Program-made: the position numbers and the translations under genes
Part shown: in pieces, positions 2,486 through 37,171 of the stretch
How the letters are laid out: each line of letters begins with the position of its first letter
Position numbering within the stretch: position 1 is the stretch's first letter
The notes under the pieces: generated by a model
What the model was told of the DNA's origin: nothing
Seen by the model: only the letters and a program-made list of their open reading frames with translations
Databases searched by the model: none
Assembly: GCA_002811645.1 (NCBI GenBank)
Contig: PDIP01000058.1
Span: 44,162 to 98,990 of the forward strand
From: Corallochytrium limacisporum Hawaii
Lineage: Eukaryota > Protista > Pluriformea
Direction of reading: 5' to 3'
Length of the DNA stretch: 54,829 nucleotides

Positions 2486-4249
2486 ATGAAGTTCTTTGCT
2501 TTCGACACCAACACGTATCTGCTGACCCTGCTGGGTGTGATTATTCCCATTGCCAATGGCCACCCGCTGCCAGCGCGTAGCACTCCCTACTCGTGCTGGT
2601 ACAGTAACTGCGGGGACGCGTGTTCAGGTAATTTCTATTCCACTAACTCCACTGGATGGGATGGTAACTTGCTACCCAATAAGGATCAAGACCACGCTCG
2701 ATTTGGTCGTCTTGTGATCGAAGATATGGCCAAAGATGTTGCCGCAATGGGCAGCGGATATGAGGACTATATCGGACCCAAGTTGGGTGAATTTACTGTT
2801 GTGAAAGACGGCATCATGGATCCTTGGGATACCATGATCTACAAGCTTAATGCCGTGGCCAGTCCAGCCCTGCTTGCCCCATTCCATGTTCAACGCACGC
2901 CCGAGAATGCCGCGGACTGGGACGACTGGTGGGAAAGCTTACAGGATATGTTCCCGAAAGGACTCACTGATGACGACGGGAATGACATGAAGGGTCTTTG
3001 TGTAAACGGATCCACCGAAAAGAGTTTCATTCCTCGCTATGTGTCATTCCCGACGTACCATGCACGATATCACAGACTCGGCAGGGGAAATGAGTATGGC
3101 TTCCAGGAACCCGAGGAGCTCATGTCTCGAGTCTGGGACGCCAAGGCCAAGGAACTTCAAGGCGCACCACGCGAACTGGTCATGGTAAATGGCATGTACG
3201 CTGGATGCCAGAAGGGTTCGTTGGAGTACGAGGAGACCATTACCGATTCTCTTACTACCTCCTCTTCACGCGAGTTTGGCTCCAGTATCAGCCGATCCAG
3301 TAGCGTTGAGCTCAGTGCCTCAGTATCCTACGAATTCGACACATGCTTCGGCCTAGGTCTGGTTCCCTCCTTTGAGACTAAAATTCAAACAAGTTTGACC
3401 TCCGGACTGGAAAGTTCGTCTTCCCAGGCCTTTGGTACTGAGGAAACGTACTCAGAGTCAGAGGAAATTGGGCTGGATTTCGGTCCCGTGGCGCCACAGC
3501 TGCCTCCCCGTTCCGTCACCAACATCACCATGTACGCTGACCAAATAGTCGCAGACATGATCTATACTGGCGACGCCGTCTTTGATGAGGATTACACTGG
3601 TCTGCAGTTCTATATTGACGGCTATGGTGAACAGAGTGTGACGCTGGATTCCAATGACGAAAAAGAGGTTGTGGCGGCAATTAACGCTGGACTACTGACT
3701 ACTCCTGCCAAGGTCAAGGAAACCCTAAGGAAGGCTTCCCGCGCCATGGGTGCCGGCTGGTCGGAAACGTTCATCTCTGGTATGGTGTCTGCTTCCGGTT
3801 CCGCGAAGCTGAGCACTACTGTGGGTGACAGTGTCATGATGAAGATCCACCAATGTAATCTGGATGCCCTGGAAGCAAATGGCTACGTTGTTGACGGGCG
3901 CCCTAGATGTGACTTTGAACTGTCGAGAACTTATCCTGTGAACTATGATTGTGATGGTAACCCAACTGTAACTGAGACCGAGACAGAGACCGAGACAGAG
4001 ACCGAGACAGAGACCGAGACCGAGACCGAGACCAACACCGAGACCGAGACCGAGACCGAGACCGAAACCGAGACCGAAACCGAGACCGAAACCGAGACTC
4101 AGACCCATACTGAAACAGAGACAGAGACCCACACCGAGTCTCCGAAGCCGCCGAAGGATGACCGGCCGAAATGCTTTAAGCATCTCGCAGCCTGCTACAT
4201 TTTCAAGAAGGTCGCCCCGGACTCATGGTACGTTCAACAGCATTGCTAA
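2486..4249 (+). CDS. Secreted aerolysin/ETX-MTX2-like beta-pore-forming protein with Thr-Glu repeat linker and short Cys-containing C-terminal peptide (587 aa)
   Basis: N-terminal hydrophobic signal (YLLTLLGVIIPIANG). Ser/Thr-rich strands flank an alternating amphipathic hairpin (YEETITDSLTTSSSREFGSSISRSSSVELSASVSYEF-DTCFGLGLVP-SFETKIQTSLTSGLESSSSQAFGTEETYSESEEI). This is followed by LPPRSVTNITMYA..YTG, matching the aerolysin-family 'vPP.s...v.......y.g' strand, and a closing ISGMVSASGSAKLSTTV strand. Confidence 0.75.
   Translation: MKFFAFDTNTYLLTLLGVIIPIANGHPLPARSTPYSCWYSNCGDACSGNFYSTNSTGWDGNLLPNKDQDHARFGRLVIEDMAKDVAAMGSGYEDYIGPKLGEFTVVKDGIMDPWDTMIYKLNAVASPALLAPFHVQRTPENAADWDDWWESLQDMFPKGLTDDDGNDMKGLCVNGSTEKSFIPRYVSFPTYHARYHRLGRGNEYGFQEPEELMSRVWDAKAKELQGAPRELVMVNGMYAGCQKGSLEYEETITDSLTTSSSREFGSSISRSSSVELSASVSYEFDTCFGLGLVPSFETKIQTSLTSGLESSSSQAFGTEETYSESEEIGLDFGPVAPQLPPRSVTNITMYADQIVADMIYTGDAVFDEDYTGLQFYIDGYGEQSVTLDSNDEKEVVAAINAGLLTTPAKVKETLRKASRAMGAGWSETFISGMVSASGSAKLSTTVGDSVMMKIHQCNLDALEANGYVVDGRPRCDFELSRTYPVNYDCDGNPTVTETETETETETETETETETETNTETETETETETETETETETETQTHTETETETHTESPKPPKDDRPKCFKHLAACYIFKKVAPDSWYVQQHC
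3971..4138 (+). repeat. Coding hexanucleotide tandem repeat (ACC/ACA-GAG)n encoding a (Thr-Glu)n tract
   Basis: gagacc/gagaca units are directly visible and translate to TETETE... with a few N/Q/H variants. Confidence 0.95.
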
Positions 4250-15347: not shown

Positions 15348-16214
15348 AAAGAAAGGAGGAGGGGGCCCTTGTTTGAAACGGTGGGATTTGGGGCGTGTGC
15401 GGTCTGCGCTCTGGGTTTCGACGCTTCGCCCTTTATTTGCCGTCCGCTGACCCTGCCTGTCTTGTGGGCTTGCCGTGGAGATTTTTGGGTTTGGTTGTTT
15501 TGGTGGAATGTGCGTTTTGTGTGCGCAGGGGTTGGCTGGTGGCGTATGGTACGCGTGTTTGTGGATATTGACGGGTGTGCGGGTTCGGTGGTGCGCGGCC
15601 GTGGAAGCAGGAAGCTTGCAAGTAGAGCAAGCCTTATCCCAGGCTCTTGCGGGACCCACGGCCTCTTGTTCACTGAAACCTGTGTGCCAGATGTAAGTAT
15701 TGATCAAATTTATCTAACAGTGAATCGGTGTTATCGCTGTGGCTCAAACATTGCACAGTCAGCCTATCCAGATAGGGGACGGGCAGGTCTTGTATACTCC
15801 CGGGTGCTTCAGCGCGGCCCTGTACCCGCGGTGAGTGTTTGTGAGGTACGGTGGTACCTTACACTGCTCCAAGGGATCAGCGTGCTTACTCTTTCCCGTT
15901 CTCCTCGAACCCTCGTGCGCAGGAGGAGAGTCAGTCCCGAATAAGGTGCTGACGGTCTTCAAACAATGCTTTGAAAAAGGGACAGACTGGTGTAAGGTGA
16001 CAATATTATATATACGGAAATGGGTGCAGTGGTTACCATTAAATGAATGGGCGGATAAAGGTGCCCTGTTCTTCTTCCTCTCGGTCGTACCGCGATGTAA
16101 AGGGGACTTGTAACCTATCAACCTGTTTGCTGATCCGTCATAACGTTTGCGTTGTGATACTCTGCCCAGGCCAGCCACCGATTCCCAAAAGCGGCAGCGA
16201 AGCGTTTTAATCCC

Positions 16215-19200
16215 TCACAGTAGTGGCTCCTTGGTCTTCCTCAGTGACCGCACGACGATGGAGACCACCAGCAATACAGAGGCTGATCCGGCGAAGAGTA
16301 AAAGATGGTCATTACCGGGAACCTCACGCAGACCACCCTCGACAGTGTTTTCGTCAGTTGTCTCTGCTTCTTGCGTTACCGTACCATTGACCGCCGTCCT
16401 GCGCCGACGGTCCGGGACGTAGCCACCCACCGGCACAACTGTAAAGCCCGTACCAGGCAAGAGAACGATATCACCGGGATTGTTACCGCTTCGGTCATAC
16501 AGATTCACGACGGTGATTGTGGCGGACTGGACACTGTTTGCTTCAACGGTTGACAGTGCAGAAATGTCGTCTAAGGGCATCAGGATGGTAACGATATCGT
16601 CTTGGCATAACACTCCCGTAGTGAAGTTACCTACAACAGTGGCGTCGTCTGTAAGCAGCTCCACTACCGCAGACGGTATAGGATCAAAGTTCATGCAGTC
16701 CACATTCTCATCCAGCTGAACTATGACCTTTCGTGTTGACGTGGTGTACGATACACTTCCGTCTGGTTCAAACAGGCGCAGCTCCTGACTTGACGGCAAC
16801 AAGATGCGTGTCAGAGTGGGTGCAGTGCCATCAACAGTGAGCGGGAAGGCAGTTCCGTTAATGCCCAGCCCGGCGAAATTCGAAATGTCTGCCAACTGCA
16901 CAGTGGCCGCGGTAATGGTTACTGTAGAGTCTGTGAAGTGCTGTTCAATGTCCAAAACAGGCACACCTACCGTTACTTGCGTACCAGAGCATCCGACTGC
17001 TTCAGCATTTACCGTAACGGTGTCTCCCGAACTAAGTGTGAGTTTAAAGACCGCAGACACAGTGTTCATACAAGCCAGACTGACCGTGCTGTAGGTGGCT
17101 TCGATGGTGGGAGTCGGGTTACGACCTCGCAACACCACCGGTACGCCCTCTGGCGGGTTGAGCAAAAGAGCAGCACCGGGGCCAGAAGTAATGATGGGAA
17201 TGTCCAGTTCATAGGCATGAAGCAATGGATTGTGGGCTATGTCACGCAAACCTTCGATATGAACAGTCGCGGTGCTGAGGGTCGACGAAGTGGAGGACAA
17301 AGCGTTCGCGATTGCATCCAGAGGAAGGTAGACGGTGATGATGTCTCCCTCACATTCTACGCCCACTTCAGGGATTTCGGGTCCTTTTTCAAGGTCGCCC
17401 TTGAGTTGTAATTTTCCGGATGTAAAGGTGCAATTGACTGATTCACTAGCTTGCAGTACTAGTTCAGTAGTCGCCTCCTTGCCCTGTAGGGTAATATCTT
17501 CTTCTGCCGGCGCCAGGAGTGCGTCTATGGTGGGGTTGGTCAGGTCCACAACCAAAGGATAGTTGTCACTGCCGGAAAAGACAGCAGACTGCACTTGCGA
17601 CTCACAATTGCTGCTCGCTGACAATAGTACTCTGCCGTCCAGTATCTTCGCGGCAGCCAAATCTTCGGCACGCACCTCGATCTGAATGAACGAACTGGCA
17701 AGTGAGATGGAATATGTAGGCAGTGTTTGGGAGGGCACCTGACTTGCGTCAATCGAGTCAGAGCCCAGGTAATATTCAAGCTTATCTTCCGTCCAACAGG
17801 CGATCAAGGCACTATCTTCGGTGCATGGATCATTGGCGGATTTGACGGCATACAGTACAGACAGTCGACGGGCCTGCGGTTCCGTAGCTTCAAGTGTATC
17901 ATAGAGAAATGACACATCGATGCCAGTTTGGAGCAAATTGGAACCGATTGCCTTGGTGAAACGGCTGCCCCACGACTCGAACGGTTTGCCGCACTCTGGG
18001 TTAGTCAGAATGAGCATAAAATTGGAGCCTCCAGCGTTATTCAGGTACACATCGCGGCCCAGAGTCTTGGGAATGGCCAGCTCACCCTCCACCTGTATGG
18101 ACGGACACGCAGGTACCAGGTTGACAGCAATGTTGATGTTCTGCTGCAGAGTGCGATCACACGATGGCTCAGCACGAATCTGCACGTCCTCAAAGACACC
18201 AGCCACGTCTGCGTTCGGATCCAGCGTGACCTCAAGCCAGATGTCGGTATACTCCTGACGATTAAGTCGCCAATTGAAATCACGGCCCTGGGTGGCAGAA
18301 CGGAAGAAATCGCCATTAATCTTGAACACAAGTCCGGATCGTCGCGTGGTGATGGGATAAACAGATGTGTTATCAGTGTGCTCACGATCAACGGTACCAT
18401 CGCTACGAATGCGGAACTTGAATACCTGACCCTTAGTGGCGAGTACGGGTTGGTTGCTGCGGTCCGCTGGCAGGCCATCTATCAGGTTGAATATGACCTT
18501 CTGGCGTTGGAAAGTAACCTTCGGATAGTGCACACACATAGTCTGGCCAGCGTTGAGCTGGTACACAGGCATACCATTCTCATCCGCAAAAATATTAAAG
18601 TCATACGAGTCACCGGGCTGGCGATCTTCCAAGTGCAGGCCAATGGCCAAACCCTTTCCACCCTGGATAGAGTACCCACTGCCGCCGGAATAATTACCAG
18701 TGAAACGGACGCCAAATTTACGCTTCTGGATCTTGAACGCAAAGCCACCCGCGTACTTACCCGTCTGCGTGACGGAACCACCGGCCCAGATTGTCTGGTA
18801 AACACTTCCAATCTCATAGGACGATATGGCAGTTTTGGACGCCTGCTCCCAACGACGATGGCGCTCGAACTCTTTAGGGGGCCCTCCACCATTTCGAGCA
18901 TAATATTCGCGGCGGTGCCGGTGGAGGTGTTCCTTCACAACATCCATTTCAGTGGGCGTCTCCTCAATCGTCACTTCTTCACCGGCATGGACTCTTACCC
19001 ACATGTCGCGTAGGCGGTTCAAAGCCCGGGTGATCCGCTCTTGTTCACGATCGCGGCGCCAGGCCCTGCGCTTTTCACGAACAACATTAACGTCGGCAGG
19101 TCCTCCGAGGGGCATGTGACGGCGCTCGGCATGCAATTCGCTCAGAATTTCGCCCGTATTCTTGGGTAGATTCTTATGATATGGATTCGTATGTGTCTCC

Positions 19201-22200
19201 ATGACATGATTAAACAGCTTTTCCGCCACCTCCCAGTTGACTTCGTCATCGTTGATCTCGGTCTGATAGATCGGATCGTATCCCGTACTGCGACGGCGAC
19301 GGCCGTTGGGGTTATTTGGTGCAATAGCACCTCCGTTACCAGCTTGGATCTTCGCAGGGCCCACTCCACCACCAGCGTCAAAATTAAACTTGAAATCGAC
19401 CGCTGTGCCAAAGTTGGCACTCTTGTTTACCTTGATACCTGGCCTCTTGTAAGCCATTTCGACGACTAGGTTATACTTGACGTCACCTGCAAAGGACAAA
19501 CGCTGGATATCGTAGGGTCGCAGTTCAGAGAAGTACTTGTCCTTGACGTGGTTGTGATTAGCCATCTTCTCACCGGGCAAGTATCCACTACCACCTTGGT
19601 TGTAGTAGGAGTTTGGAAACAGGGTGCCAATACCGCTTGGTCCAGTATTTGCAATACTTGAGGCTTTGTCATAGACACTGGCTATAGAGTCACCAGCGAA
19701 TTCATTACCTTGCGGCAGAATGGGTGATACGTCAGTGAGGCGGCCAGACTTTTTCGCATTGCCGTCGCCGTTACGTTCAAGGAACCATTTGAATCCTTGC
19801 GATGATCCATTTACGGCAACCTTGGACGTTGCTTCATACCTAGTTAGCACATTGTCCAGGTAGTCAATCTCACACTGCAGAGCTTCTAGAGAGTTCCGTA
19901 CAATCGCCTCTTCATCTGGGGTCAGGGTACCACCCTCCAGACTCTCCGTAGCATTTCCATATTGCTGTAGGGAATAGGACAATTCCGTGCTCAGGAAGAC
20001 GTAGTCAGCCGCCCCCCAATCATCTTTGCCCTGGGGTCGATCCACATTAATAGTGGGAATGGGAGTCTGCAGGACAGAGCATGTCTCGGCATCGAAGGTA
20101 ACAAGAATGCTCAGGGCTAAAGAAAAGAAGGCTGGTGTGAAAATCAGTAGATCTCTGGGACTGCCAAATAGTTCATCGTCTTCCGAGTCAATCCACCACC
20201 CGCTGGTCGTGTCCACATTGTCGTGGCTGGTTAGCCAGGAAACAGCTTCGACAACATCACCAGATACAGTGTCACTGGCGGAGTATTTGTTATTGTTGGT
20301 GTAGCCAAGGCCAAAGAGGACTTCCGCCATCGCAACGGCACCAGTGTCTACTGCACCACCAATACCAAAGGGAGCTGTAACAGTAAGAACACCGCGTTTA
20401 TCCACACCGAAGCGAACACGAAACATGGCGGAACCACCCACCGAACCGGATTGCGCAAAGTGCACCGATTCGGCAAATTGCTCCACTGCTGCCGCCGCAA
20501 TTTTCGCAAAGGAATGATCTCCGGGCGGCTTTCGCAGCACAAGGAAGGCCTGCTCCGTTAGGTCGCTGACCAGGCTAGATGCTGTTTGAACAAATAGGGC
20601 CTGATCAGCGTCGCTAAATGTTTTCTGAGCAATCTTGTCAGCCATGTTGCCAACGTCATTCTTTGAAATGGACTTTGATTGTGGATTCACGCCAGAGTAT
20701 TGACCACTCACATCTGGCAATATGTCACGATCGTTGGGGTTTTGCAGCCCAAAAACTTCCTCATTCAACGTCTTAAGGTATGAAGCGGTGAGTGTGTCCA
20801 ATGTGGCTGTAAGGTTGGCGATCCCCGCACACGAATTGGGTACGCCCACTTGATCAAGGGAGCTGGTAGCATCGAGGTTCAACGGCAAAGGAATGGCACG
20901 AGGGCCACCACCCTGATTGCGAATGCCGACAATAACCACATTGACCGCGTGGCTGATGGTCTCGGTGAAGAAGGACTTATTGCGAACTGCGGAGAATACT
21001 ACAAAGGAAGTTGCAGGATCCTCTGTGGCCTCGGAGGCGGTAAAGTTGTGTGCAATGGAAGAAGTGCCCTGCAGTTGGCCCGAACAACTGGAGCCGGAGC
21101 AGGCCGTGCTGTCAATGTTGTCTTCAATAGTGTAGTTGAAAGTCAGATACTCACATGTCTGTCCGTATGCGTAGATCTCCTCATAGGTAGTAGTGAGTGT
21201 GTAGTTGGCTGTGGCTGTCTGGGGAATTACGAAATCAATTGGCGGGTTGGCTGATTTGCAGGTGGTCTGCTCGGCCACAGAGTTGCCATCGGTATCCACC
21301 AGTCGCAAAGTTTTCACAGTCGGCGTAGCATAGTACTGCCAACTGATCTGCTTAGGGTTGTTAATGTCCACCGATGCGTCCACAAGTGTAACATGTTTGG
21401 TGTGTTGGGACAAAGGCCCAAAGAATTCGCTGCTCCGGGTGGATGACTCGATTCGTGTATCCTGTGGAAAGCGATTATACTGCTGCAGGACAACGGAGTA
21501 GGACAGCGGCGGAAGGAAAATGGTTTTGGTGGAAAAGTAGTTCCAGGACACAGTCTTAGACAAGCAGGATGCAGAAGACTGATCCAGGGGAGTAATAGTG
21601 ACCGTTGCACCGCCACTCTGCACGTTGTCACAGTCAGAAGCGGCGGCAGTGATCTCTAGTGGCTTTGTCAGAATCTGACGGAAATTTGCACCAGAGATAC
21701 TATTCTCGATCGACTGAACGTGGTAGTACTCTGAATTGGAGGTGGTATTAGAGTTGGAGTAGAAGTGCGCAGTGTTGTCAATCTGCTGCTTGGACACAGC
21801 TTCATTGGGTCGCACCAGTTTTGATTCATTGCCCTCGAATTCAAGTTTGTCAGTACCGCACGTGATGGTTGAGTTGGGCAGGAAACTGGCAGCTGCACAT
21901 TTGTAGTCGTTGTTGTTTAGCGTCGTGGCGGCATCCGTGGGCTGATCCACCTTGTTGCTGGCCTGTGTCTGATAGGGTTGCATGAAGACGTACACGCTTC
22001 CACCCTTTGGCACTGCAACATTGTAACGCCCAGTTTCTTCATTGATCATTTGACAGGTTGGATCGTTGGCTAGCTGTGTGTCAATTGTGCAAGCACGACA
22101 CAGATTGTAAGGCACGCAATTATCGAACAATCCCGGATTGGACAGGCCCAAACCAAAGGTAACAAAGCCCTGCACACTCAGCGCTGACTGATCCCTCAAG

Positions 22201-25200
22201 GTTATGGTACCAAAGTTGTCCAAGTGTTGCACATTAACCTCCAGATAGTAGTAAGTATCACCATCAAACTGAAACGATGGTAATGCGGCCCCAGTCTCCG
22301 AGGCAATGAAGCCCGGAGTGTCCGAGCCTGGAAAGCGGTTCTCCAGCACAACCCACACGGTCTGCAGTGCTGATTGAGTGACACCACTGCCGAGGTCAAT
22401 ACCAATCTGAACGTCGCCTCTTCCGGTGGCCGCTGTTTGATAAAAGTTTTCAAAGCAGTCGAACTTATCTGCAGCGTTGAGATCAAAGAGATGAAGACTG
22501 GTGCAAAAGGCAGTGACGGATGGCGGGGTGATACGGTAGGGCACATCCGCGAGTCCAGCCGCACCATCTGCAGTATTGACCTGGATAAGTCCTGCTGACA
22601 GGAATGGAATTTCATACTGGAAGGAACACACTTCGGTGACCGTCGCACCATCAGCGCCGGTCAAACTGAATGTGTTCAGGATGGCCTCACCAAGGGTAAA
22701 TTCGGTGCTGAAGCTGGAGTCGCTGGGCAGTAGGAAGGAACTGTCTGCTCCGAAGAACGGAATGCCAGACTGGATACCAAATTGACAGCTGGCCTCTAGG
22801 GTCACTGCCCTGCTGGCGGAGGTTAGACCGATGATGCTTGCCTCCTGGCGGGTAACCTGCCACAATGCAGTTCTTTCGGTACAACCAAGGTCAATGTTAA
22901 GTCGGGCTGACAAGGAAAAGGCAGGACCGCTCTCCGCAATTTCGTACTGTGGTCTAACCGCGGCACATTCAAACGTAGAGCCGATGACGGTGTCAAGGTT
23001 GAGGGCCACGGTGGTTGCAATTGCTTGCGTGTTGTCCAAAGATCCGAGATTCAGGGTGACGCCAAAAGTAGCAGCAAAGGTAGGCAGGTCCACCTCCTCG
23101 ATGTCAAGTAGAGTGGCTGTCTGCGGGACACAGTTGCAGATTGAACCCTCGCTCAGTGTAACCGCTTGACTGGTACGGGCAACGTCGTAAGTCACCTCGT
23201 CGCTGCGGCATTTTCCATCCTGTCCAGGCAGCACAAAGTACGCCGGCACTTCATTCTCGGGGTCTGTGCTATCCTCGACGGCGGATACCAGACAATATCT
23301 CTCCTTGACCACGGCCAGAACTGTTCTTGATGAGGAGCTCTGGGTGCCTAGATCAATCTGGGACGAGATGCGAACAAGCTGATTGGGCTGTCCGAAGATC
23401 TCCACCTGGTCGCTGTTGCTCTGGAAGGACAGTGCCGCAGAGTCCACATGCTGCGAGCTTGGATTCGTTAGATCAGTCAAGCTGAGCACCACACCGCAGT
23501 ACGGCTGGTCGGTCAGACGATCAGTGCAATCTATAACTGCCGTGCCGTTCACTTCCGGGCAGATTGGTTGAATACAACGTCCTGGGTTGTACGCCACCTC
23601 AATATTTGTTGCACTTACAAAAACTTCCACGTCGCTCCATTGGCACTCGGGGTTGCCCGTGTTGTCCTTTGAGTCAACCGCCTCGTAGCCGGGCAGACAA
23701 TCCAGTGGAAAGCACGCTCCAATGTTTCCCGGAGCCGTGGTATTGTTGTTAGATTGTTTCTGTATCAGATCCTGCACACCAATAGGTGCCACGGGACTTT
23801 CGTATTTGAAACTACCAGAGCACTCCTGGCACACTGGCAGACCACCTCTGACGCCGTCAGGGATGGGGCAGCCAGTGCTGCACACACTTGGACAGGAAGA
23901 AAACTCAGCCGTGGTGCATGTCATTGAGCCTGCCACACTGTCTAGGCCCTGGATGCCGGACGATGTCACAGTGTTGAGAATTTCTTCGTATCGCGTGGTG
24001 TCAGATATGAAATTTGCGAACACAACATTGTCACCAAATGAAGTCGTACTCGTACTTGTCTCCGCACCAAGGAAGCTACCAACAGTCTCACAGTACATCA
24101 CCTTGTCATCGTTCCTGGCCTCAATTGCTGTTGTGCCGGCGGCGCTCTCAGTCAGTGACGTACCTTCCAGTGCATCCTGTGTGATCTGGCCATTCTGTGG
24201 AATCATGATGAACTGCGGAGTCATATCTTCAGCCACCACCAGCGTCAGACTGGCATCCACAGCCGCCTCCAGTGTAACACGCGGCACAATGGCTCGCTTC
24301 GCATTGCCATGGGTACCATACCTCTCATACATCACCGCACTGGCGTTCGCGTACTGGGTCAGATAGTCACCATCCGTCGCTAATGTATTGGAGAGATCAC
24401 CATCTCCGCTCAGTGCCAGAATCTGAGACGCTGTCAACTGCGTTCCTTTCTGTCGTAGACGACCCTGCGCTCCAGGCTCCGGCAGATCCGGCAAAGAACG
24501 TCTTGAGATGCCGATCGTCGTCTCCGGGAAGACCACATCGTCCAGGTACGCTGCTCGAGTGTCATCCACCACGTACTGGAAGCCAAACGGTTGTGCCTCA
24601 ACAAGCGCTCGGCAACACTGCCAGCTGCTTGGCTCGTATTCCGTGGCTCCAGGAGAATCTGTTGTTACCGTGCCCGGCGATGACACGGCAGCCAGCGGAT
24701 TACATATGGTGTTGTCCAGTGCATTGACATCCGTCGCATAGCTTAGGTACTCCGTGTACGGTATCGTGATGCCGTAAGAGCCTCGTACCTGCGGTGGCGG
24801 CAGGTTCAAACTACCCATAATATTCCAGTCCGGCACGCTCGAAACTGAGTCCTTGATCTGCTCAAAATCGTAGGTCTGAGTCGCGGTACCAAAGGTTAGG
24901 TAGTCAATGTCCTTCGTAAAGGAGGATAGTGTGGCGTTCGCTTCGTACACGTCGATAAACGTACTATTGAACGGACTCTCCGCGTTCCAAACCTTCAAGC
25001 ACGAGTAGTTAGTGGCTTCCTCAATACCTGTCACGTTGTCTTTGAAGAACGCAGATGCTGCCAGGCCTGGGAATCCCCCAATATAGTCAAAGTCATCTGC
25101 AGCCACACTGCCGGTTGAATTGCTCACCTCTGTGAACGTGATGGTTGTTGGTATCACGTACTGGCTGCCGGGGCACCCAATGGTGTAAAGTAGACCATCA

Positions 25201-25648
25201 TCATCGTTGTTGCTGCCGCTGTACAGGAAGGCATCTGCATTGCTCGCAACGTAATAGCAGCCCTGAGTTGTATACGTGTACAGATTCGAATTGTCATCCT
25301 TCTCAACAATATCAACTCCGTTGCAGTCCGCCTCCTGTGTGAAGTAGTCTCCAATCTTGTCCATTTCGGTCTGCACCTGATCAACCTCCGGAACGACCGC
25401 AAAATACAGTGACGGGCTCAACAGTCCTCCCAATTTACTAGAAGTGTAGTAAGAAGTGACTAAAGATGCCAGCTGCCAGACGTACGCACCCGTGAATGGA
25501 TCATTTTCTATGAATATTCCAGCTACCGCACTGTCGTCGTAGCTGATGGTGGTAAAGTCTTCCCTAAAAAACGCCAGTGCTTTCCCTTTCAAACTTGCAG
25601 ACCGGGTCTCCGGAGTGGCTGTGACATTCCGACAATCTGTCGATGGAC
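16215..25648 (-). CDS. Giant type I membrane protein (>3100 aa), main exon: Cys-rich/beta-rich ectodomain, putative beta-pore-forming core, three Ig-like repeats, C-terminal TM helix
   Basis: 9.4-kb open frame (ORF track 16215-25670) with many N-x-S/T sequons. C-terminal TM (LLLFAGSASVLLVVSIVV) is followed by the short basic tail RSLRKTKEPLL. Motifs FLVLRKPPGDHSFA, DLLIF, LSFAGD and LEDRQPGDSYDFNI..DENGMPVYQLNAGQTMC are present. The ORF's first Met has no signal peptide and probably lies in an intron. Confidence 0.85.
16470..17560 (-). repeat. Three tandem ~120-aa Ig-like repeats within the giant membrane protein
   Basis: Recurring pattern D.T.PT...E.V.C...C..D.(I/V)T(V/I)..P(L/V).(D)I...(T/S)AT(V/I)....(L/I).D...N, e.g. 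CEGDIITVYLPLDAI / CSGTQVTVGVPVLDI / CQDDIVTILMPLDDI. Confidence 0.7.
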
Positions 25649-25817
25649 CTACGAAAACGTTTGTCGACATTTCTTATTTCTATTTCTCAGTCTGCTGTCA
25701 TGCCCGATTTAATTCATGCGTACATGGTACTTTTATTCATTCTTGTATGCAGCTACTATGGTCCCGAGCATTTGAATCCCTTTTTGCAGGAGATGCCGTG
25801 CACAATTTACCACTTAC
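25649..25817 (-). other. Predicted GT-AG intron (169 nt) in the giant membrane protein gene
   Basis: Minus-strand donor G|GTAAGT at 25817 and acceptor TTTTCGTAG|GT ending at 25649. The phase-1 join gives an in-frame ...EDIGV-G-PSTDC. Confidence 0.6.
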
Positions 25818-25888
25818 CAACGCCAATGTCCTCAATGATCTGCCTTTTCAAGCTTTCGTACGCCCCACTTGATCCCACTCCATGAAAT
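25818..25888 (-). CDS. Predicted upstream coding exon of the giant membrane protein (FHGVGSSGAYESLKRQIIEDIGV)
   Basis: Preceded by a pyrimidine tract TTGCTTCTTTTCTTTCCTTTAG and followed by GTAAGT. Open in the frame required by the downstream exon. The true start exon was not resolved. Confidence 0.5.
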
Positions 25889-27153
25889 CTAAAGGAAAGA
25901 AAAGAAGCAACGGCTAGATATGCGCTAGCACAGCACTACGCAGTAGCCAATGAATGGTACAGGAATCTGAAGAGAACCCCAACACAAGAGAAGAAACACC
26001 TGCCGCCCCCTTGGCACCGGTGGTCCCTAATTCTCGTTCAATGTATGGGTGTCTGTATGGTCCCTGCGGTTACTCTCCATTCCCTCTCTTCACCATAGTG
26101 AGCAAACAGTATGCGCAAAGTGATCCCAAGCAGAATTGCCTTTGAGCTCACAGATACATTCGTACTCACACTCCGCGCCATTATTACCCCCCAATTCACT
26201 GTCTCGGCCATCATTCAGTACGGAGGATGGCAGTGGGCCTGCCTCATCACTAACCTCATGTCAGAATGGGGCATTTCAGTTCCGCCCATGGCGCATGACC
26301 ATGCCAGAGCGGACAGTGCAATAAGAGAGTGTCAGACACACCACTCTCACCCCGTCCTCCAGCCTGCCCCGAGCCAGGGGTGTGCCACGATGGAATACCG
26401 ATGGGTGAGGGAAGATTCAGGACAGCAAACAACTTTTGTCGTCGTGCGCTTGCTTTTCCCATTGGGAGAACACAAAGGAAATCGGGGGGGTCGGGGAATG
26501 CCTTGTTTCCGCACAATCCGTCCTTCGCTTCTGTTTAATCCCCCCACTTTCCCCCCGGGGGGGTCCACACTCCCGTCCTAGGCGGGCGGGCGCGTGTGCG
26601 CTTGGCAAGGGAGAGCAGTGTGGTCACAATTGGGGGGGGGCACCAGTACCGCTTGGAAAAAGCTTTTTGGCCCGTTCGAAAATTCTGCGTAGGGGGGGAA
26701 AGAGGGGAAAGCGCCGAAGGCGACGGCGTTCGGAGCGCGCACAAGCGAGAACGAAAGTGACGGCGAGATTCGAGGATGGCTTTTCCGACGCGCACGGCTT
26801 TGCAGTAAACAAACAAAGGCAACGGGAGGAGCGCGCAGCGAACTGGAGGAAAAGGACGCGGAAGCGCTTGACGACCACAGCACAAAGGGCGGAAGAAAAC
26901 AGAGTGGGAAGAGGCAGGTGCGCCATTGCTTTGGTCCTGGACCTCGCCCTAAACTTCGGGGTTGACCCATCGTCTTCCCCGAGGACCTTTCCCCTCTTTG
27001 CTACACTGTCCATATTCATAGTAAATGAATTGGGATCTATCTCAACACCTGCCTATCATCTTGGGGCAGAGCAGAGCAAAATGTTGAAAGGCCGGAAAAA
27101 GAAACTTTCAAAAATAAGGACTACAGCAAAAAAACACACAAGAGAAGAAAACA

Positions 27154-28778: not shown

Positions 28779-31700
28779 ATGTTTGCTCCCGGACTCGCCT
28801 ACGCCGCCCTCACCGTAACACTACTGGCCGAGTTATCATGGGCACAATCCGCATGCGTTGACTATAGTTTTGTGCCCCCATCCAACGGGCCTAGTGACTT
28901 TGAGCTCGAGGGGGTGGCAAATTTTCTAGAAAACGGCAATGTTCTCCTCACCTTTGCCAGTGTGGAGCGTGCACCCCTCCAGGGGACAGCATCTCTCACA
29001 AGTCAGGACATCGTGATCGATGGAGGGATCGGAAATTACCTCGAAGCCGACGCACTTGTTGACATCTCCACCCTCGCGGACGGTTTGCAGCACGGTGATT
29101 ACATTCGTATGGGCCTATTCAATGTTTCGGATCCCACCGCCACTCCTACTGTAGTGCTGGCTGGTGAGTTGGACCTGTCACCAGCTGGGGAAGATGATCC
29201 CCGTGCCTTTCGCGATCGCGACACAGTCGTCGGTCTAAACCTGGACCCAGCCGATCCTGACGTTTCCCAGGTCGCTGCACCTTTGAATCTGACGCTCCCC
29301 ACGGATGGATCCTCTACGCGTATGCGTCTACACCTTGAGTTGCGCAACAACGTTGTGTCCTTCACGGCAGCAGTCGCCAAGACCGGCGAGACGGCCGCAG
29401 ATCTTGACAAGCCTTCCTTCGAATTTTCACAACCAAGTGGATTTGCAACGACCGCCTATGACCTGCCTCCGGGCACCTACCGCCTCGCGGTCACTGCCCG
29501 AACTCAGAATCGCGTTCGTGGGTCCACTTTCACAATGGCAGGGCTTCGTCTTGCGGCCAGTGGCAATGAAGCACCCGGTTTCTGCCTCAACAACAGCCCA
29601 GACCAGAATAAAACTGTGCCGCTGATGTGTCCTACCTCACAGCAGTTTCAGGCCGCCAACGGAAACTTTGGTGATGTCCTGCTGCAAGAGGGCGAGGTGC
29701 TCGTCGTCGGTGATGATGGCGTGCTGACCCTTGAGCCACTGGAGACGAACCCAGGCTCGGACACGGCCCCAACCACGACTGCTGTGCGTTTCATTCAACA
29801 ATTCGATGGACGGGGCCTTACCAGTCTGTCCAGTCAGGTCGATTTCCAAGTTCTGACCATTGCAGGAACCCCAACGGGATCCAGCGTCCAGCTGTTCTTT
29901 CAGGGATCTCATGAATACTTTCCCCGTTTGGGTGTCATTGCAGACTACACGTGGGGTTATGATGATGAACCGACTGATTTTAGCGATAAGGACCCTCCAT
30001 ACGTGTACAAGGCCGAGGCGCATCTGCGGATCTGTTCTGATGTGACCGCAAGTCTGTACAACAACTACGTTGGCACAAAAGTACAAGGAGAAGGCACAGG
30101 CACCATTCCGGAACCGTGCGAAGTCAACCTTACCATCGAAACCGACCGCATTATGGACACTACCGAGCACAGCCTCATCTTCCAGTACGCAAACGGAGTC
30201 ATGTTGCACGCCTGGTGCACACGAAAACAGATGAACTGGTTGCCCAGGCCGCAGTCAGCCTACATGATCTGACCTTTATGGGTGATGCTGTCTCTGGTTT
30301 CACACGTCCTGAACTGCTCAACGCACTCCTCGGCGATTCCTTCACCGCAGGTGCCTCAGTGCTTAGTGATGTTGGCTTAGGCGGCGAAGTACAAATTAGC
30401 GAGGTCAATGTCTTAGCCGAGAACACAGCCTGCGATACCTACGCCAATTTCTGCCCGCCATACTTGTTCGTACCCTCCGCAGGGCTGAAGGCGCCGTCGG
30501 TGTCTGGAAAACTGTCACAGCTGGATAACCCGGCCGGTAATATTACAGCGGGGAATGGCGAACCACTCGCCCCGACCACCCTCTCCGCATCCCTCTATGG
30601 CGAAGTCTCCCGCAACGATGCAGAAGAGGTTATGCTGAACACCACCTGCCGTAGTGAACACAACGCGAGCCGCGTGAATTTCCGGCAAAGCGTGCTAACT
30701 GCCATTGATGTGGACTTCTTGTACGCAAACCAACTCTTCTTCGTACCGCTCGCAACCGACGCAATGATAGGATGGTCCATTGATTTGGTCCCCAAAGCTC
30801 TATCCTCCGTCGCAGGTCTCCGCATCGTCTTTGAGCCGACCAACCAAAATGATACAGACAATGGTGCTGGCACATACGAGGGCGCCAATGGCACGTACGC
30901 AACCTACACCATATCTATCCGTGGGGGAATAGTCGACGGAGAGGAAGACCTCACCACACTTGTTCAGGAACACTTCCTCCATGAGGATTTTCGTCCGATT
31001 GTTGACTTCCAAGGTGGTGCTCGGGTCGACCCCTCCGACAACACTGAAGTTTTCAACACCACCTACGCGGACTATGGTACACTTGAGGTTAGCATAGAGT
31101 ATAAGGATGGGAATCTCGTGGTCGAGGTTCTCGCCCCAGGCTTCCCGGATCGTCCACTGGCGTTCCTGGCTACTCCTATTGGCGAGCTGACGGACTACGT
31201 CGGAAACGAATTTTTCCTATCGTATGCTGCCTGGTCACCACTCGCAAGCAACACGACTCTGTGTCCGATATTTGGTGGAGAGGACAACGACACGTCCGGA
31301 TTCCTCAACTTCAAGGAACTTACCGCCTTTTCCTTAACCAAAGACTGTTACCCTGCGACGACTTGTGGGGAGCTTGTTAGCTACTACATCGACCGCACAC
31401 ACCAGGACAAGTCTCAGTTCCTCGCCGCTGGCAACACAGTAATTGACAACACCACCCAAATCATCACCATGTCATCCCACGGCATCAACGCCGGCAATAC
31501 GCGGTCCCAACTCCTCATTGGCAATAGTACCATCGACACAGAGGATCTGCAGACTTTGAGCCTGGATCTGTTGGTTCTCCTTCGTACTGACCGTGAGCAC
31601 AAGGACCGTCATCCAATTGAAGGGTCCATCTTGCTTCCCTTGACCCCGGTCTACGGTGTCGATATTTGTGCCCCGATTACCGCCCTAATTCATTATGATA

Positions 31701-34700
31701 CCGATGAGAACAGCTCAACCGGCCTGTCCGTAACGCTGGCTATTTTGCAAGATCGGCCGAGTATATTTGTACGCGAATACGGGCGTGTAGTGGACGCCGC
31801 TGTGGACATGGACTCGGATTCTAGCGCTGTGACGCGCGTGACTGGCGATGCGCCTGCGGTTGGTGTTTCACACCGCATACGTCTCGAGTATGATGGTTCT
31901 CAGCTTTCTCTGTATCTGTTTAATGAGGACAATGCAATGGTTTTGGCCAATAACGGAGAAAACGCACTCCGCTTGACCGTAGATGTGGACAAAGGCACAC
32001 TACTGGATGTACTGGGTCGGACTCTGGCGCTGGGTGCCATTGTACAGGCGTCCCCAGATGCGTTCATTACCGTCGATATTGATGCCGCCGAGGTCAACAT
32101 CCAGCGCTTAGAATGCCCTACCAAACTTGAGGACGGGAGCACGGTAGACACCAACCAGGTGTCTTGCGATGACGTAGCATGGTCAGCAGAATTAGCCGAC
32201 AACTCTGTATGGGCCACAAATATCCAAAACAAGTTTTCTGAGGATGGTACTCTGACTTTAATGTCCAACATTGCCACAGGCAGCAGTAATCTGGCAGAGG
32301 CTAATTATCACTCGTACCGCCTTCGCTCCGGCATTGCTGGTGGACAATTTTTGATCAATCGCATCTTTGCACTAGATCTCGCCATTGACCGCGCTATTTC
32401 GGTGGTCGTCAATGGCGCAACCATCACAGCTCCGACGTTTGGTGCCGATCTGGCACTCACCTTCCATCCGTATGAGTTGTTCTCGGCTCCTGGCAGTGTT
32501 ATTTTGGAATTTGATGCTGGTGCGGCGGCTGGTACATTCAATGTTGGAATCCGTCTTGAGTCCTCAAGCGCATTCCAGCGGGGTGGTGCCTCGGATACGA
32601 CACCTGTTTGGTTTGACCGTACTTTTGAGCTCGGTAACACCTTCACGTTCCGGTTGGAGTTTTATCAAAACTTCTTGGTGGCCACAATCACGAAAGGAGG
32701 TACGGTGGCCAATGATGTGGCCAGTATCCTCAGCCGCCTAGAACTATTTGTACCTGATTTTGACGCGTTCTTCCCTGCTGGTTTGACTCAGCCTGCGCTT
32801 CACGTCCTCGAAAACGAAGCACATGCAGATGATGTAACCGCTGCTAAGCTTGTGCTATCCAAATTCGAGGTGCAGAGCTCCAGTTCCGCGTGCGCCAGTG
32901 ATTCACAACTTAACCCTGATTGCATGGCACCAGCCTACAATTGGGCCAAAAAGCCAACTTCAGCTCCGTTCCAGAATGCCGGCAAAGTCAACCTTATTGA
33001 CAACGGTAACGCCATGCAATTCTCTGCCCCTGGAGGTCTAGCACGGACTTCACAGATATTTGCAGCTGCGCCAGGATTTCGGAACTTGCTGATCAGCTCA
33101 GAGTTCGCCGTAAAGGACGAGACCTCCGGCGAAGAGCCTTACGGTGCTTACGCCATGGCCCTGCAGCCCGACGGACTGCGTCAGTTGTCTCCAGCCGTTG
33201 TGCTGGTTTCGTTTCCTGAGGGATCAACCACTGCGCGGCTTTGTGCTCTTACCGATGCCTATCTTGGTGATTTGAAATGCCCTGACCCCAGCAGCAGCAC
33301 CGGATCCATCGAAATTGATCGCAGTTCAGTGCTCAGCGGGAACCCGATCACACTGGAACTTGTCTATAGCGACTCAAGCCAAGAATTAGGAGCTTTGCTC
33401 TATTTCACTGGCTCGGACGAGTACATTGGCCTGGTGAAGATTGGAGCTATCAGCAATTTGGGCACTGCACACAAACTTGGCCTGACCTATGCGGTGGCCT
33501 TAGTTGCGGAGATAGACGGTCCCGCTGACGCAAGTCTGCAGCTGACCATGTTTATGAACATCCTGCTACACAATGACTGTCCTGAGAGCTTGCGTAAGTT
33601 CGTATACCAGGCCGCGTCAGGTGTGGACTTGGGTTTTACGCCGTTCTCTGCCGATGCGAATGATGTCATCCACTATGATTCCGGCGCTACAGTGCAATCA
33701 ATGCCCCTCAATTTCCTGAACAATTCGAACACGAACGAATATTTCACCCTTGATGAGCTGTTTGAGTGCGACGGTCTGTCCACCATCGACAAAGACACCG
33801 GCTCGCTTAAAATCCTGCCAGGTACAACTGCTGAGGAAGCCGGAGCCTGTCGTGTGGCTAAAGAGATTGACCTGAGCGGACTAGAATATGGTGAAATCTG
33901 CATGTTGGGAAAGCTGGACTCTCCGGATATGTTTGCCGATGACCTGTTACCAATCTTCTGGGGTGCGGTTGGTCTGCGTTTGCGTTTGCAAGACACAACC
34001 ACCGAGAGACAGATTTTCTTCGAGGTCGACTCGTACGTGAACACAAACTTAGATGTGCCGAACCCCATCAATCTCAAAGATCCTTTCCAATATCACTCCA
34101 GCATTAATGTGTTGGCACGTGATCAACCGTCTCAGGAGGTGAGCACCGAAACAGACGCTGAACTGCTGAGTCCCTTCACTCCGCTCAAAGATAGCACCGC
34201 GTTCTTTGACCCGCAGCCGGATTCCACTAGCTTTATTTTCCAGACTTGCGGAAAGATTGAACCACGACGCTTTGTGGTCCATACTGTACTACCCTCCTTT
34301 GCAATTGGCAATTCTGAAGGGTACTTCAATGCGCGCGAGGTGGCAGGCGATTCCCGCGAATACAGCGGTGCGAACACTCTGCTTAGTGGTTTGAATCTGC
34401 TCACAGTGTCTGCCTTTGGTCAATCCAAATTTGAAGTTTTCCAGCTGTCGTTCTCTAGTTCAACAGAAACAAGCCGCTACGAGGCAACCGTGATAGAGAA
34501 GCTGCAGACGATTGATGATCCAAGTACGCGCAAAAGACGGCGCAGTCGTCGTCAGGCCCGGAAGGCCATGGACTCCGTATTTCAAAGGGAAGGTGACAAT
34601 GTGAACATGGATATGGAAGAAGACGATACGTACCGCGGAGCATTCCATCTGAAGGAAAACTTTCTCTCCGCATGGCACGAACAGCATCAGCGTAATCTAC

Positions 34701-37171
34701 ACAATACCGGCAAGAAATACCGTCGCGATGTGACATGCACCACCACTGTGCATTCGGACTCGAGTATCTCTGATGCAATTTTAACCTCCCTACAGTCCGC
34801 GGCCGACGATGAAATTGTCACAGTTTGCCTGCAACCCGGCGTGACCTACATTGAAGACGTTTCCATCCCAAACGCGGCCACAGCTACGAATGTGAAATTG
34901 GTCCTGACCACCGACGGTTCAACTCACGCTATAATTGAGGCAGACACGGGCTCGGACCCTGCCCTAATTATTGACTCACCGCAGACTGAGATTGCCAATG
35001 TAATTGTCAGGGTCGACACCACTAAGGCACAGTCGGATGACAGTATTGTTATCATAGGTGCCCCCTCAGTGACACTGAACCACGTCACGGTTCACGCGAT
35101 GATCGATGCCAATGCCTGGGTTGGGACCTTTGAGGCGGTCGTGCTTGGTGTGCACCAGGACATTGTCATTTCCAATTCGTTTATCACTATCAGTGACCAG
35201 CAAGCTGCTCTCGCAGCAGCAGAGTCCAATGGTGGTGGGATGACAAACCTGACGGCCATTGCCATAGATCCCATAAATGGTGGTCAGACTGATAATTTGG
35301 ACGGCCTGGTGGTGGCCAACAGTACAATCTCTAAAGGGTGGGAGTTTGGTGTTGACCTGTCGGCATCCGGACTAACCGGTACTCCTTCACGACTGGTGAC
35401 AGTGTCCAACAATTTGTTCCAGGATGTGGGAACCCCAGTGACCATTGCCTTAGACAATCATGCGGCGATATCAATTCGCGGAAACCTTGTGTTCGCAAAC
35501 TCCAGTGTCGCCGCCAACGTGATTTTTGGCGGCATCTTTGGTCCTGGGATAGCTATTGATGATGCGCTCGATACCGCCGCCGAAAGTATCGCTATCTTTG
35601 GAAATGCGTTCCTCAGTCCGCAATCCCCTCTCATTGAAAACAACCTGGCCGCCCAGGGTATCGACGTTGAACCTCAGGTTTACTGCAACTATCTGACCAC
35701 GGGATCACCTGATGTGGCAACTTTTTATAATGGCATTACTGTCACATCTCTGTCCACCTATCTAACCAACAGTGGCGCTTGTGTCACCATAGAGACTGCC
35801 AAGCTAGACACGTGTGCAAACGTCGATTCGGCGGCTCTGTCCCTGACCGAGGACATTCTAGAGGATGAGAGCTGCTGTGTTGAGGCGTTCATGAATCCAA
35901 TCAATTTGCAGGCCGAAGCCGTCCTGTTTGACGGCTGTATCAAAAATGAGGCCACTGGTCTTGTCCAGTGCACAGGCACGTCTCAAGACCCAGCCGCAAT
36001 TCGGCTCCTGACAGAGATCGACTTTAGGGAGGACAAGAATACAATCCTGGATGTAATCCTGGAAACAACAGCAGGGGATGGAGATTTCAACTTGCAGCTC
36101 GCTCGGACAGACAACGCACTGCGTCCGTTGCCAATTATGCTGAACGTTGCACCGAACTCGACAGTTACCTGTCCAAATGGAGCGCTTTCCCTGAGTGATG
36201 TTGGCTATTCCACAACCATTGCGGAGGCCAGCGAATGCGTCAATTTCCCGAGCACAGATGACAATCGCCGTGTTCGATTTGTAATTGACCCTCTTGGCAC
36301 TCGCGTGACCGGCTCCTTGACGGGAGAGGCCAGTGACGGTGATTTTGTAGCCGATGGCTTCATGACTGCGTTCTATGGATCCGGCGGTGGGGTTTTCTCC
36401 ATCACACTGCAGTCTACCAGCAGCTTCACCATCAAGCAGGCACGGATCATCAGCTGTACCTTTGGTCTTCCTTTTATTTCTTCGTTCACTGTCGACGATA
36501 CGACTTCAGGCACTGCCTCGGACACCTTTGTTGAGCTCGATAGCAAGGACGAGGAAATTCCCGTTAAGGAGCGGCCCAACGGTGGTGTCTTGCTAAGTGG
36601 AAACTCACGCGAGATCCGCACCGTAGATAGCTACCAGATCAGTGATAGTGTTGCGGTACGCTTCGACTTTAACATTTACTTTACGAGGATTGATTATCTG
36701 AATCGTCCGGACTGCTCTGTGGACGAAACGCGTGATCTAGTTGTGACTCTGGAGGGCGACAGAGGCAATAACCTCGAACTCCTGCGTGTCAGCCAAGGTA
36801 CGCAGCCCCTACCCTCCGCCAGTTATGCGATTGACGCGTCCACATCCACTACTGACCTATTCGGTGTTCGGGAGACAATAACCTTTGGCGGTGACGAGTC
36901 CACTAACACAACCTTTGTTCCGCTGCAGAATCTAGACTTCAGTATCACGCTTGTTCAACAAACGACGCTGTCCGTGAACAGCTTGTTATCTAACCCGTTG
37001 GGCACAGCCAATGCAAATATCACAACGGAAGTGAACGACGGCTCATTAACATACCCACTTAGCATCCCTGTGAACGCAACGGATGTGGGCAATGCACGAA
37101 TTCTCTTTGAAGCAGACAACAGTGACTGTATCATTGCGAATCTACGCACATTGAATGTCGTGGTGCTGTAG
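28779..37171 (+). CDS. Giant secreted protein (~2797 aa once a 1-nt frameshift at ~30203 is corrected): ~6-7 tandem divergent legume(L-type)-lectin/ConA-like domains, polybasic spacer, parallel beta-helix, further beta-sandwich domains
   Basis: Signal peptide MFAPGLAYAALTVTLLAELSWA-Q from ATG 28779. L-lectin-like motifs DFELEGVANFLENGNVLLT, HRIRLEYDGSQLSLYL and FFEVDSYVN...DPFQYHSSINV, with Cys-pair linkers between units. Beta-helix cap ILTSLQSAADDEIVTVCLQPGVTYIEDVSI is followed by I.N/V.N coils (VTVSNNLFQD, ISIRGNLV, IAIFGNAF). The two ORFs (28668-30272 and 30116-37171) overlap in different frames. Confidence 0.75.

Follow-up and report, generated by a model that had tools for sequence, protein, structure and literature searches.

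A candidate convertase-excised spacer in a putative lineage-restricted giant surface protein of Corallochytrium limacisporum

An intronless open reading frame (ORF) of Corallochytrium limacisporum Hawaii encodes a putative giant surface protein of 3151 amino acids (aa), in which an internal, charged segment of 146 aa is bracketed by basic motifs of the kind cut by furin/kexin-type convertases. The ORF lies in a 54,829-nucleotide (nt) stretch of contig PDIP01000058.1 (the window; G000:C240 in a 286-contig, 24.1-Mb genome assembly), to which all nucleotide coordinates refer unless another contig is named, and residues are numbered according to the 3151-aa ORF. We give about an even chance to the explanation that this insert is a connecting spacer, removed by such a convertase during secretion as one part of a general processing of giant precursors, and we infer that the protein is the precursor of a lineage-specific giant surface glycoprotein with an extracellular topology. 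A sequence-only reading of the same DNA had proposed a pore-forming core whose second β-hairpin is interrupted by an insert held between convertase sites; the sites and the plausibility of excision are upheld by the excess of such motifs, by their conservation in a paralogue and by a furin/kexin homologue in the genome, and the pore-forming core and the interrupted hairpin are not upheld.

Basic sites in and around the insert

The evidence for processing comes from the motifs themselves, from their counterparts in the single detectable relative of the protein and from the occurrence of similar motifs elsewhere in the window. The relative is a paralogue (eukprot Clim_evm1s112) on contig C114 of the same genome, with 46% identity over 2311 aa. 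Its ORF occupies positions 1-7089 of L009 (G000:C114:1-9000), such that its N-terminus is cut off by the start of the contig, and it ends without a transmembrane (TM) helix; runs of N, i.e., assembly gaps, lie within 500 bases after its end, and its C-terminal anchor may therefore be missing from the assembly. All of the motifs, coordinates and residue numbers quoted by the sequence-only reading are present in the 3151-aa frame as it gave them, including LRKPPGD (aa 1712-1718, nt 20517-20537), AGQTMC (aa 2374-2379, nt 18534-18551) and the insert at aa 2128-2273. The ORF, the insert, the basic sites and the putative membrane anchor are as follows.

16215-25670, minus strand: intronless ORF of 3151 aa, putative lineage-restricted giant surface protein (translation, single open frame)
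19290-19301, minus strand: RRRR, aa 2124-2127, proposed first cleavage site, RRRR/S (motif; GNRRR/S in the paralogue)
18852-19289, minus strand: insert of 146 aa, charged, His-rich and Cys-free, aa 2128-2273 (composition and paralogue alignment)
19065-19079, minus strand: REKRR, aa 2198-2202, inside the insert (motif; not kept in the paralogue)
18909-18920, minus strand: RHRR, aa 2251-2254, inside the insert (motif; RQRR in the paralogue)
18852-18863, minus strand: RHRR, aa 2270-2273, at the end of the insert (motif; not kept in the paralogue)
16398-16409, minus strand: juxtamembrane RRRR, aa 3088-3091 (motif; NNRRR/S at the aligned place in the paralogue)
16248-16304, minus strand: single strong hydrophobic helix, aa 3123-3141, Kyte-Doolittle value of 2.29 (hydropathy)

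The composition of the insert (13.7% R, 13.7% E, 6.8% H and no Cys, against 3.7% R, 5.4% E, 1.0% H and 1.9% C for the whole protein) confirms its earlier description as a charged, His/Arg/Glu-rich segment devoid of Cys; 36% of its residues are charged, and its net charge is about -1. The motif R-x-[KR]-R occurs at five sites in the 3151-aa protein (starting at aa 2124, 2198, 2251, 2270 and 3088), against 0.27 expected from shuffled sequences, and four of the five fall within aa 2121-2276, a segment whose own shuffles give 0.64 such sites and reach at least four in 9 of 2000 cases.

At the same place, the paralogue carries an insert of 162 aa (L009:4018-4503), which follows GNRRR/S and ends in EHLARQRR. 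This ending aligns with EHLHRHRR (aa 2247-2254), giving both proteins a common EHLxRxRR motif near the end of the insert. In both inserts, 36-38% of the residues are charged, with little net charge, 10-12 His and no Cys, and the two resemble one another beyond what composition alone would produce (z scores of 3.5 in global and 3.9 in local alignment; the score is attained by 3-6 of 500 shuffles); by this homology, the insert is older than the duplication that produced the two paralogues. The sequence-only reading had named an equally long segment lacking basic sites as counter-evidence; the homologue's segment, slightly longer than that of the 3151-aa protein, instead bears both RRR/S and RQRR, an outcome in favor of excision. 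The juxtamembrane RRRR at aa 3088-3091, located 31 residues ahead of the TM helix, is a candidate site for release of the ectodomain, and the helix, together with the short basic tail that follows it, would constitute a type-I anchor.

A suitable enzyme is encoded in the genome. A 753-aa ORF (L003:76-2334, from G000:C7) contains Peptidase_S8 and P_proprotein domains and matches furin (1p8j; E value of 4e-126) and kexin (3e-117) over both the catalytic and the P domains; it holds the only P-domain match obtained in the genome scan. Nor are such sites confined to one gene of the window: R-x-[KR]-R sites overlap at aa 1472 and 1476 of a 2351-aa ORF (30116-37171, plus strand) and recur at aa 1062 and 1079 of a 1984-aa LRR/EGF ORF (46116-52070, minus strand), and none occurs in the window's five smaller ORFs. 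Since these two giant ORFs are unrelated to the 3151-aa protein and yet have paired sites, the polybasic pairs look like a general maturation of giant surface precursors in this organism, not a peculiarity of one protein. In both ORFs the members of the pair stand from a few to 17 residues apart, and the sequence DDP(S)T-RKRR precedes each pair (aa 1472-1480 and aa 1062-1082).

Under the favored explanation, a furin/kexin-type convertase of the late secretory pathway would cut after RRRR2127 and a second time after RHRR2254, with further cuts in the 3151-aa copy after RHRR2273 and possibly after REKRR2202, whereby about 130-146 aa of charged, helical and His-rich sequence would be removed or fragmented. 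The mature product would then consist of two large chains, the N-chain ending at aa 2127 and the C-chain measuring about 820-840 aa, and a cut after RRRR3091 would release the ectodomain from its membrane anchor. The secretory character of the protein is argued from its 27 N-x-S/T sequons, its single C-terminal TM helix and the even number of conserved Cys on each side of the insert. Nearly all Cys are common to both paralogues, with 20 of the conserved ones before the insert and 12 after it; such even counts imply no disulfide across the insert, and an inter-chain disulfide spanning the excision site was rejected on this ground. Cys2560 (nt 17993) is Ser both in the paralogue and in a second strain or allele (see below), and it therefore falls outside the conserved disulfide set.

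Several points weigh against removal of the insert. Cleavage at the basic sites is a prediction from motifs; “conserved” here denotes one comparison, only two sequences being in existence, and two of the sites, REKRR at aa 2198-2202 and RHRR at aa 2270-2273, are not conserved even in that comparison. The insert is rich in Arg, and some of its R-x-x-R motifs are compositional, although the surplus of sites remains significant (about 0.005). In addition, no signal peptide is seen in the first 60 residues of the 3151-aa ORF, leaving the secretory topology of a protein that starts at this Met to be inferred from its other features, and there may be a 5′ exon upstream. Within the interval upstream of the ORF (25677-25900, minus strand), a GTAAGT donor is located near 25814, and an AG acceptor just 5′ of the ATG would connect an open upstream frame in phase; on the basis of these signals, the true 5′ end of the gene may be placed further upstream. 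Finally, the AlphaFold2 models (see below) are unusable, so the insert may yet prove to interrupt a single domain.

Position of the insert between conserved blocks

Where the insert sits relative to the surrounding β-rich segments determines whether it could act within a hairpin. The flanking segments, in the order of the protein, are these.

20271-20465, minus strand: first Gly/aromatic β stretch, aa 1736-1800 (41.5% identity to the paralogue)
20091-20201, minus strand: best-conserved block of the region, aa 1824-1860, WWID...ELFGSPRD followed by a 19-residue hydrophobic stretch with a Kyte-Doolittle value of 1.9 (paralogue alignment)
19827-20018, minus strand: probable helical segment between the β stretches, aa 1885-1948 (composition and a low-confidence model only: DSSP, with a predicted local distance difference test score [pLDDT] of about 45 there)
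19338-19502, minus strand: β stretch before the insert, aa 2057-2111, in which an invariant GGGxGP turn (aa 2100-2105) links a strand to its return strand
19290-19337, minus strand: non-conserved G/N/P-rich linker ending in RRRR 2124-2127
18651-18851, minus strand: hypervariable Gly/aromatic stretch after the insert, aa 2274-2340
18051-18650, minus strand: highly conserved downstream block, aa 2341-2540, starting from LHLED..PGD.YDF and holding AGQTMC

Identity to the paralogue varies sharply along this region. It runs at 42-55% over aa 1690-1960, 29% over aa 1961-2050 and 40% over aa 2051-2110, then stands at 17.6% in the linker (aa 2111-2127), 25.5% in the insert (aa 2128-2273) and 22%, with 22 gap columns, over aa 2274-2340, and it reaches 65% over aa 2341-2440. 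The block at aa 2341-2540 is probably a separate β-rich domain. The stretch preceding the insert, with its own conserved turn, appears to be a self-contained hairpin in both paralogues, and the stretch following the insert shares nothing with its counterpart beyond composition (z score of about 0). Taken together, a conserved turn before the insert and an unconserved stretch after it argue that the insert does not lie inside one hairpin, contrary to the sequence-only reading, in which these two stretches were the split halves of a single hairpin. Indeed, the insert is itself better conserved than the supposed half hairpin at aa 2274-2340 (z scores of 3.5-3.9 against about 0). Judged by this alignment, it looks like an interdomain spacer within a variable zone (aa 2106-2340) between two conserved blocks, outside any hairpin.

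The earlier description of the flanks as Gly/aromatic stretches with β-type alternation holds in part. They are indeed rich in Gly (10.8% before the insert and 16.8% after it, versus 7.5% overall), and Gly content is what distinguishes the region; strict hydrophobic/polar alternation is not, as aa 900-1100 and aa 2400-2600 contain more windows in the top 3% than this region does. An amphipathic hairpin is present around aa 1748-1774 in the first β stretch, and a BLAST comparison between the two β stretches detected no internal repeats.

Structure prediction contributes little to this question. AlphaFold2 models built with the paralogue have a mean pLDDT of 28.8 for aa 1690-2440 and 31.0 for aa 2255-2540, with no residue at 70 or above, and a complex prediction for aa 1700-2127 with aa 2255-2540 scored 0.01, a value that is not evidence either way on whether the flanks bind one another.

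Alternatives to an excised spacer

That the insert remains uncut is the alternative to be reckoned with most, although we think it unlikely. The protein would then be a single chain in which the insert serves as a permanent charged, helical spacer or binding module, and its R-x-x-R motifs would be a by-product of an Arg-rich composition. Consistent with such a role, the near-neutral charge of the insert is accompanied by nine i/i+4 pairs of opposite charge, a low-confidence model draws four to five helices there, the homology to the paralogue beyond composition suggests some sequence-dependent function, and only half of the four insert sites are kept in the paralogue. Against it stand the surplus of sites over the compositional expectation given above and the placement of the conserved first site, which lies at the end of the G/N/P linker, outside the helical part. 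The RRR(R)/S/T motif moreover recurs beside the TM helix and in the other giant ORFs of the window, and the genome does encode a furin/kexin-type enzyme.

There is next to no chance that the insert is an artifact absent from the real protein, whether an in-frame intron left unspliced or an error of assembly. The insert does differ in composition from its flanks and is weakly conserved, as either artifact might be, yet it contains no in-frame stops over 146 codons (the other frames have 5 and 10), its GC content at third codon positions (0.56) resembles that of the gene, and a strong splice donor (GTRAGT) is absent, features that together lead us to reject intron retention. The counterpart in the paralogue is likewise open, for 162 codons, and homologous beyond composition. 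Similarly, an independent public run yields an 8140-nt contig that follows the window colinearly over 16200-22100, with no gap or joint. This contig derives from a second strain or allele and, the RNA nature of the run being only a guess, it is no proof of expression. It differs from the window by 33 single-nucleotide polymorphisms, and among the 32 listed, 23 are synonymous and 9 non-synonymous, a ratio from which purifying selection on the 3151-aa gene is argued; the basic sites are untouched.

The proposal that the Gly/aromatic stretches are the membrane-inserting hairpins of a β-pore-former or fusogen-like protein, held inactive until a convertase excises the insert, now appears quite improbable. 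Many β-pore-formers are activated by convertase cleavage, and three features of the region could be read in favor of the proposal: (i) ETX_MTX2-type clusters come up as the language-model look-alikes of aa 1690-2127, with a score of 0.88 and 119 of 256 features shared; (ii) in the hairpin at aa 1748-1774, each of two hydrophobic faces is made up of five residues and lies opposite a charged one; and (iii) the hydrophobic stretch at aa 1840-1858, 19 residues in length, is conserved. The look-alike score, however, lies below the reliability line of 0.9, and a value of 0.88 with 119 of 256 features is rated as typical of chance or very distant matches. Hidden Markov model (HMM) searches link the protein to no Pfam family, ETX_MTX2 and Aerolysin included: genome-wide scans with PF03318 (ETX_MTX2) and PF01117 (Aerolysin) returned other loci or nothing, never the 3151-aa gene, and no MACPF/CDC or other Pfam pore-former was found, whether the whole protein was scanned to an E value of 1 or its pieces to 10. 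Profiles of aa 1700-2127 and of aa 2255-2400, both built with the paralogue, gave hhalign probabilities of 0.3% and 0.1% against four ETX_MTX2-like ORFs of the genome, and the alternating hairpins of those proteins are rich in Ser/Thr, unlike the Gly/aromatic ones of the 3151-aa protein. β-Alternation is commoner elsewhere in the protein, the half hairpin after the insert is unconserved, and the stretch before it carries its own turn. Nor do the ends that cleavage would create resemble fusion peptides, as the sequence-only reading had suggested: the predicted new N-termini STGYDP, EYYARN and WEQASK are all polar, and an Ala/Gly-rich start after the RQRR of the paralogue is not conserved in the 3151-aa protein. 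On these comparisons, a pore-forming reading of aa 1700-2400 has no support.

A related and very improbable possibility is that the region represents a new kind of membrane-active module, which would be armed by a convertase that removes the conserved His-rich helical “catch” of ~150 residues to give a cell-anchored or shed pore or fusogen. The growth of Corallochytrium passes through a multinucleate stage, and an armed pore or fusogen, if real, could bear on cell-cell or membrane remodelling before animals arose. The idea would be notable if true, yet it is based on the texture of the sequence.

The proteins detected by PF03318 form a family of genomic ORFs of about 450-490 aa, one of which (L004) reaches the Pfam cut-off at 25.6 bits. 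A 587-aa ORF of the window (2486-4249, plus strand) is a diverged relative of this ETX_MTX2-like family (BLASTP E value of 4e-14, 23% identity); it has an alternating stretch rich in Ser/Thr and, at its C-terminus, a (TE)n tract, and this aerolysin-type candidate lies 12 kb from the giant gene. One further candidate, the vitellogenin open β-sheet domain of large lipid transfer proteins (PF09172), was rejected: its match covers only 45 residues (aa 2058-2102; E value of 0.032), its 13.9 bits fall short of the 23.7 required, and the paralogue has no such match.

An orphan protein and its relation to known processing systems

Over its full length, the 3151-aa protein appears from database comparisons to be an orphan. 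No Pfam family matches the whole protein at E values up to 1, and sub-regions of the two paralogues, searched against Pfam up to an E value of 10, produced scattered sub-threshold matches, none of them common to both. Neither sequence nor profile searches of the PDB found anything. When 1.84 billion representatives were searched exhaustively with HMMER, only the protein itself and its paralogue were recovered, and word-indexed searches of 5.8 billion clusters (with region 1700-2400, with the whole length and with a profile of aa 1700-2127) added only the paralogue to the self-match. Used alone as a query against the genome, the insert finds only itself. Searches of the literature on Corallochytrium in combination with convertase or pore topics returned nothing relevant. 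The recognizable neighbors in the window are eukaryotic, comprising an MFS transporter, an amino-acid transporter, a protein with 11 LNR (Notch) repeats and the LRR/EGF protein with paired basic sites.

Known systems can nevertheless suggest how such a protein might work; the comparisons below, that with aerolysin/ETX-MTX2 apart, describe possible working and not family membership. In the F protein of respiratory syncytial virus (RSV), two furin-type sites bracket the 27-aa peptide p27, whose removal exposes a hydrophobic fusion peptide at a new N-terminus. As in RSV F, polybasic sites here bracket an internal segment of a putative type-I membrane glycoprotein, with two chains as the predicted product; in contrast to p27, the piece is 130-146 aa long, helical and charged, the predicted new N-termini are polar, and no relation in sequence or family is detectable. 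Activation by excision has been demonstrated for the inhibitory tracts of ENaC alpha and gamma, the C-peptide of proinsulin and the B domain of factors V and VIII, which share with the insert the arrangement of a poorly conserved internal piece between basic sites in an extracellular precursor, again with two chains predicted for the present protein. They differ from it in that cleavage here is only predicted; the even Cys counts give no indication of a disulfide between the chains.

The resemblance to aerolysin/ETX-MTX2 pro-toxins consists of a β-rich character, amphipathic strands, a nearby convertase-type site and the weak language-model similarity; those toxins, however, lose a terminal propeptide, whereas the 3151-aa protein has an internal insert of 146 aa and shows no HMM or profile similarity to them. 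Like ZP-module and other shed type-I proteins, it has a basic site 31 residues before a single C-terminal TM helix, a site that is kept in the paralogue, although neither a ZP nor any other known module was detected in it. Fungal Kex2 precursors are secreted and cut into several pieces at basic sites, and most of them are small, repeat-bearing proteins from which peptides are released; a pattern of processing by a single kexin-type enzyme is likewise predicted to recur across unrelated genes of the window, but the predicted products are very large multidomain chains.

Animals and their viruses are the usual context in which surface-protein maturation of this kind is considered. If the predicted cuts are real, a unicellular relative of animals would use a single furin/kexin-type enzyme on several unrelated giant surface precursors, discarding the spacers in the process.

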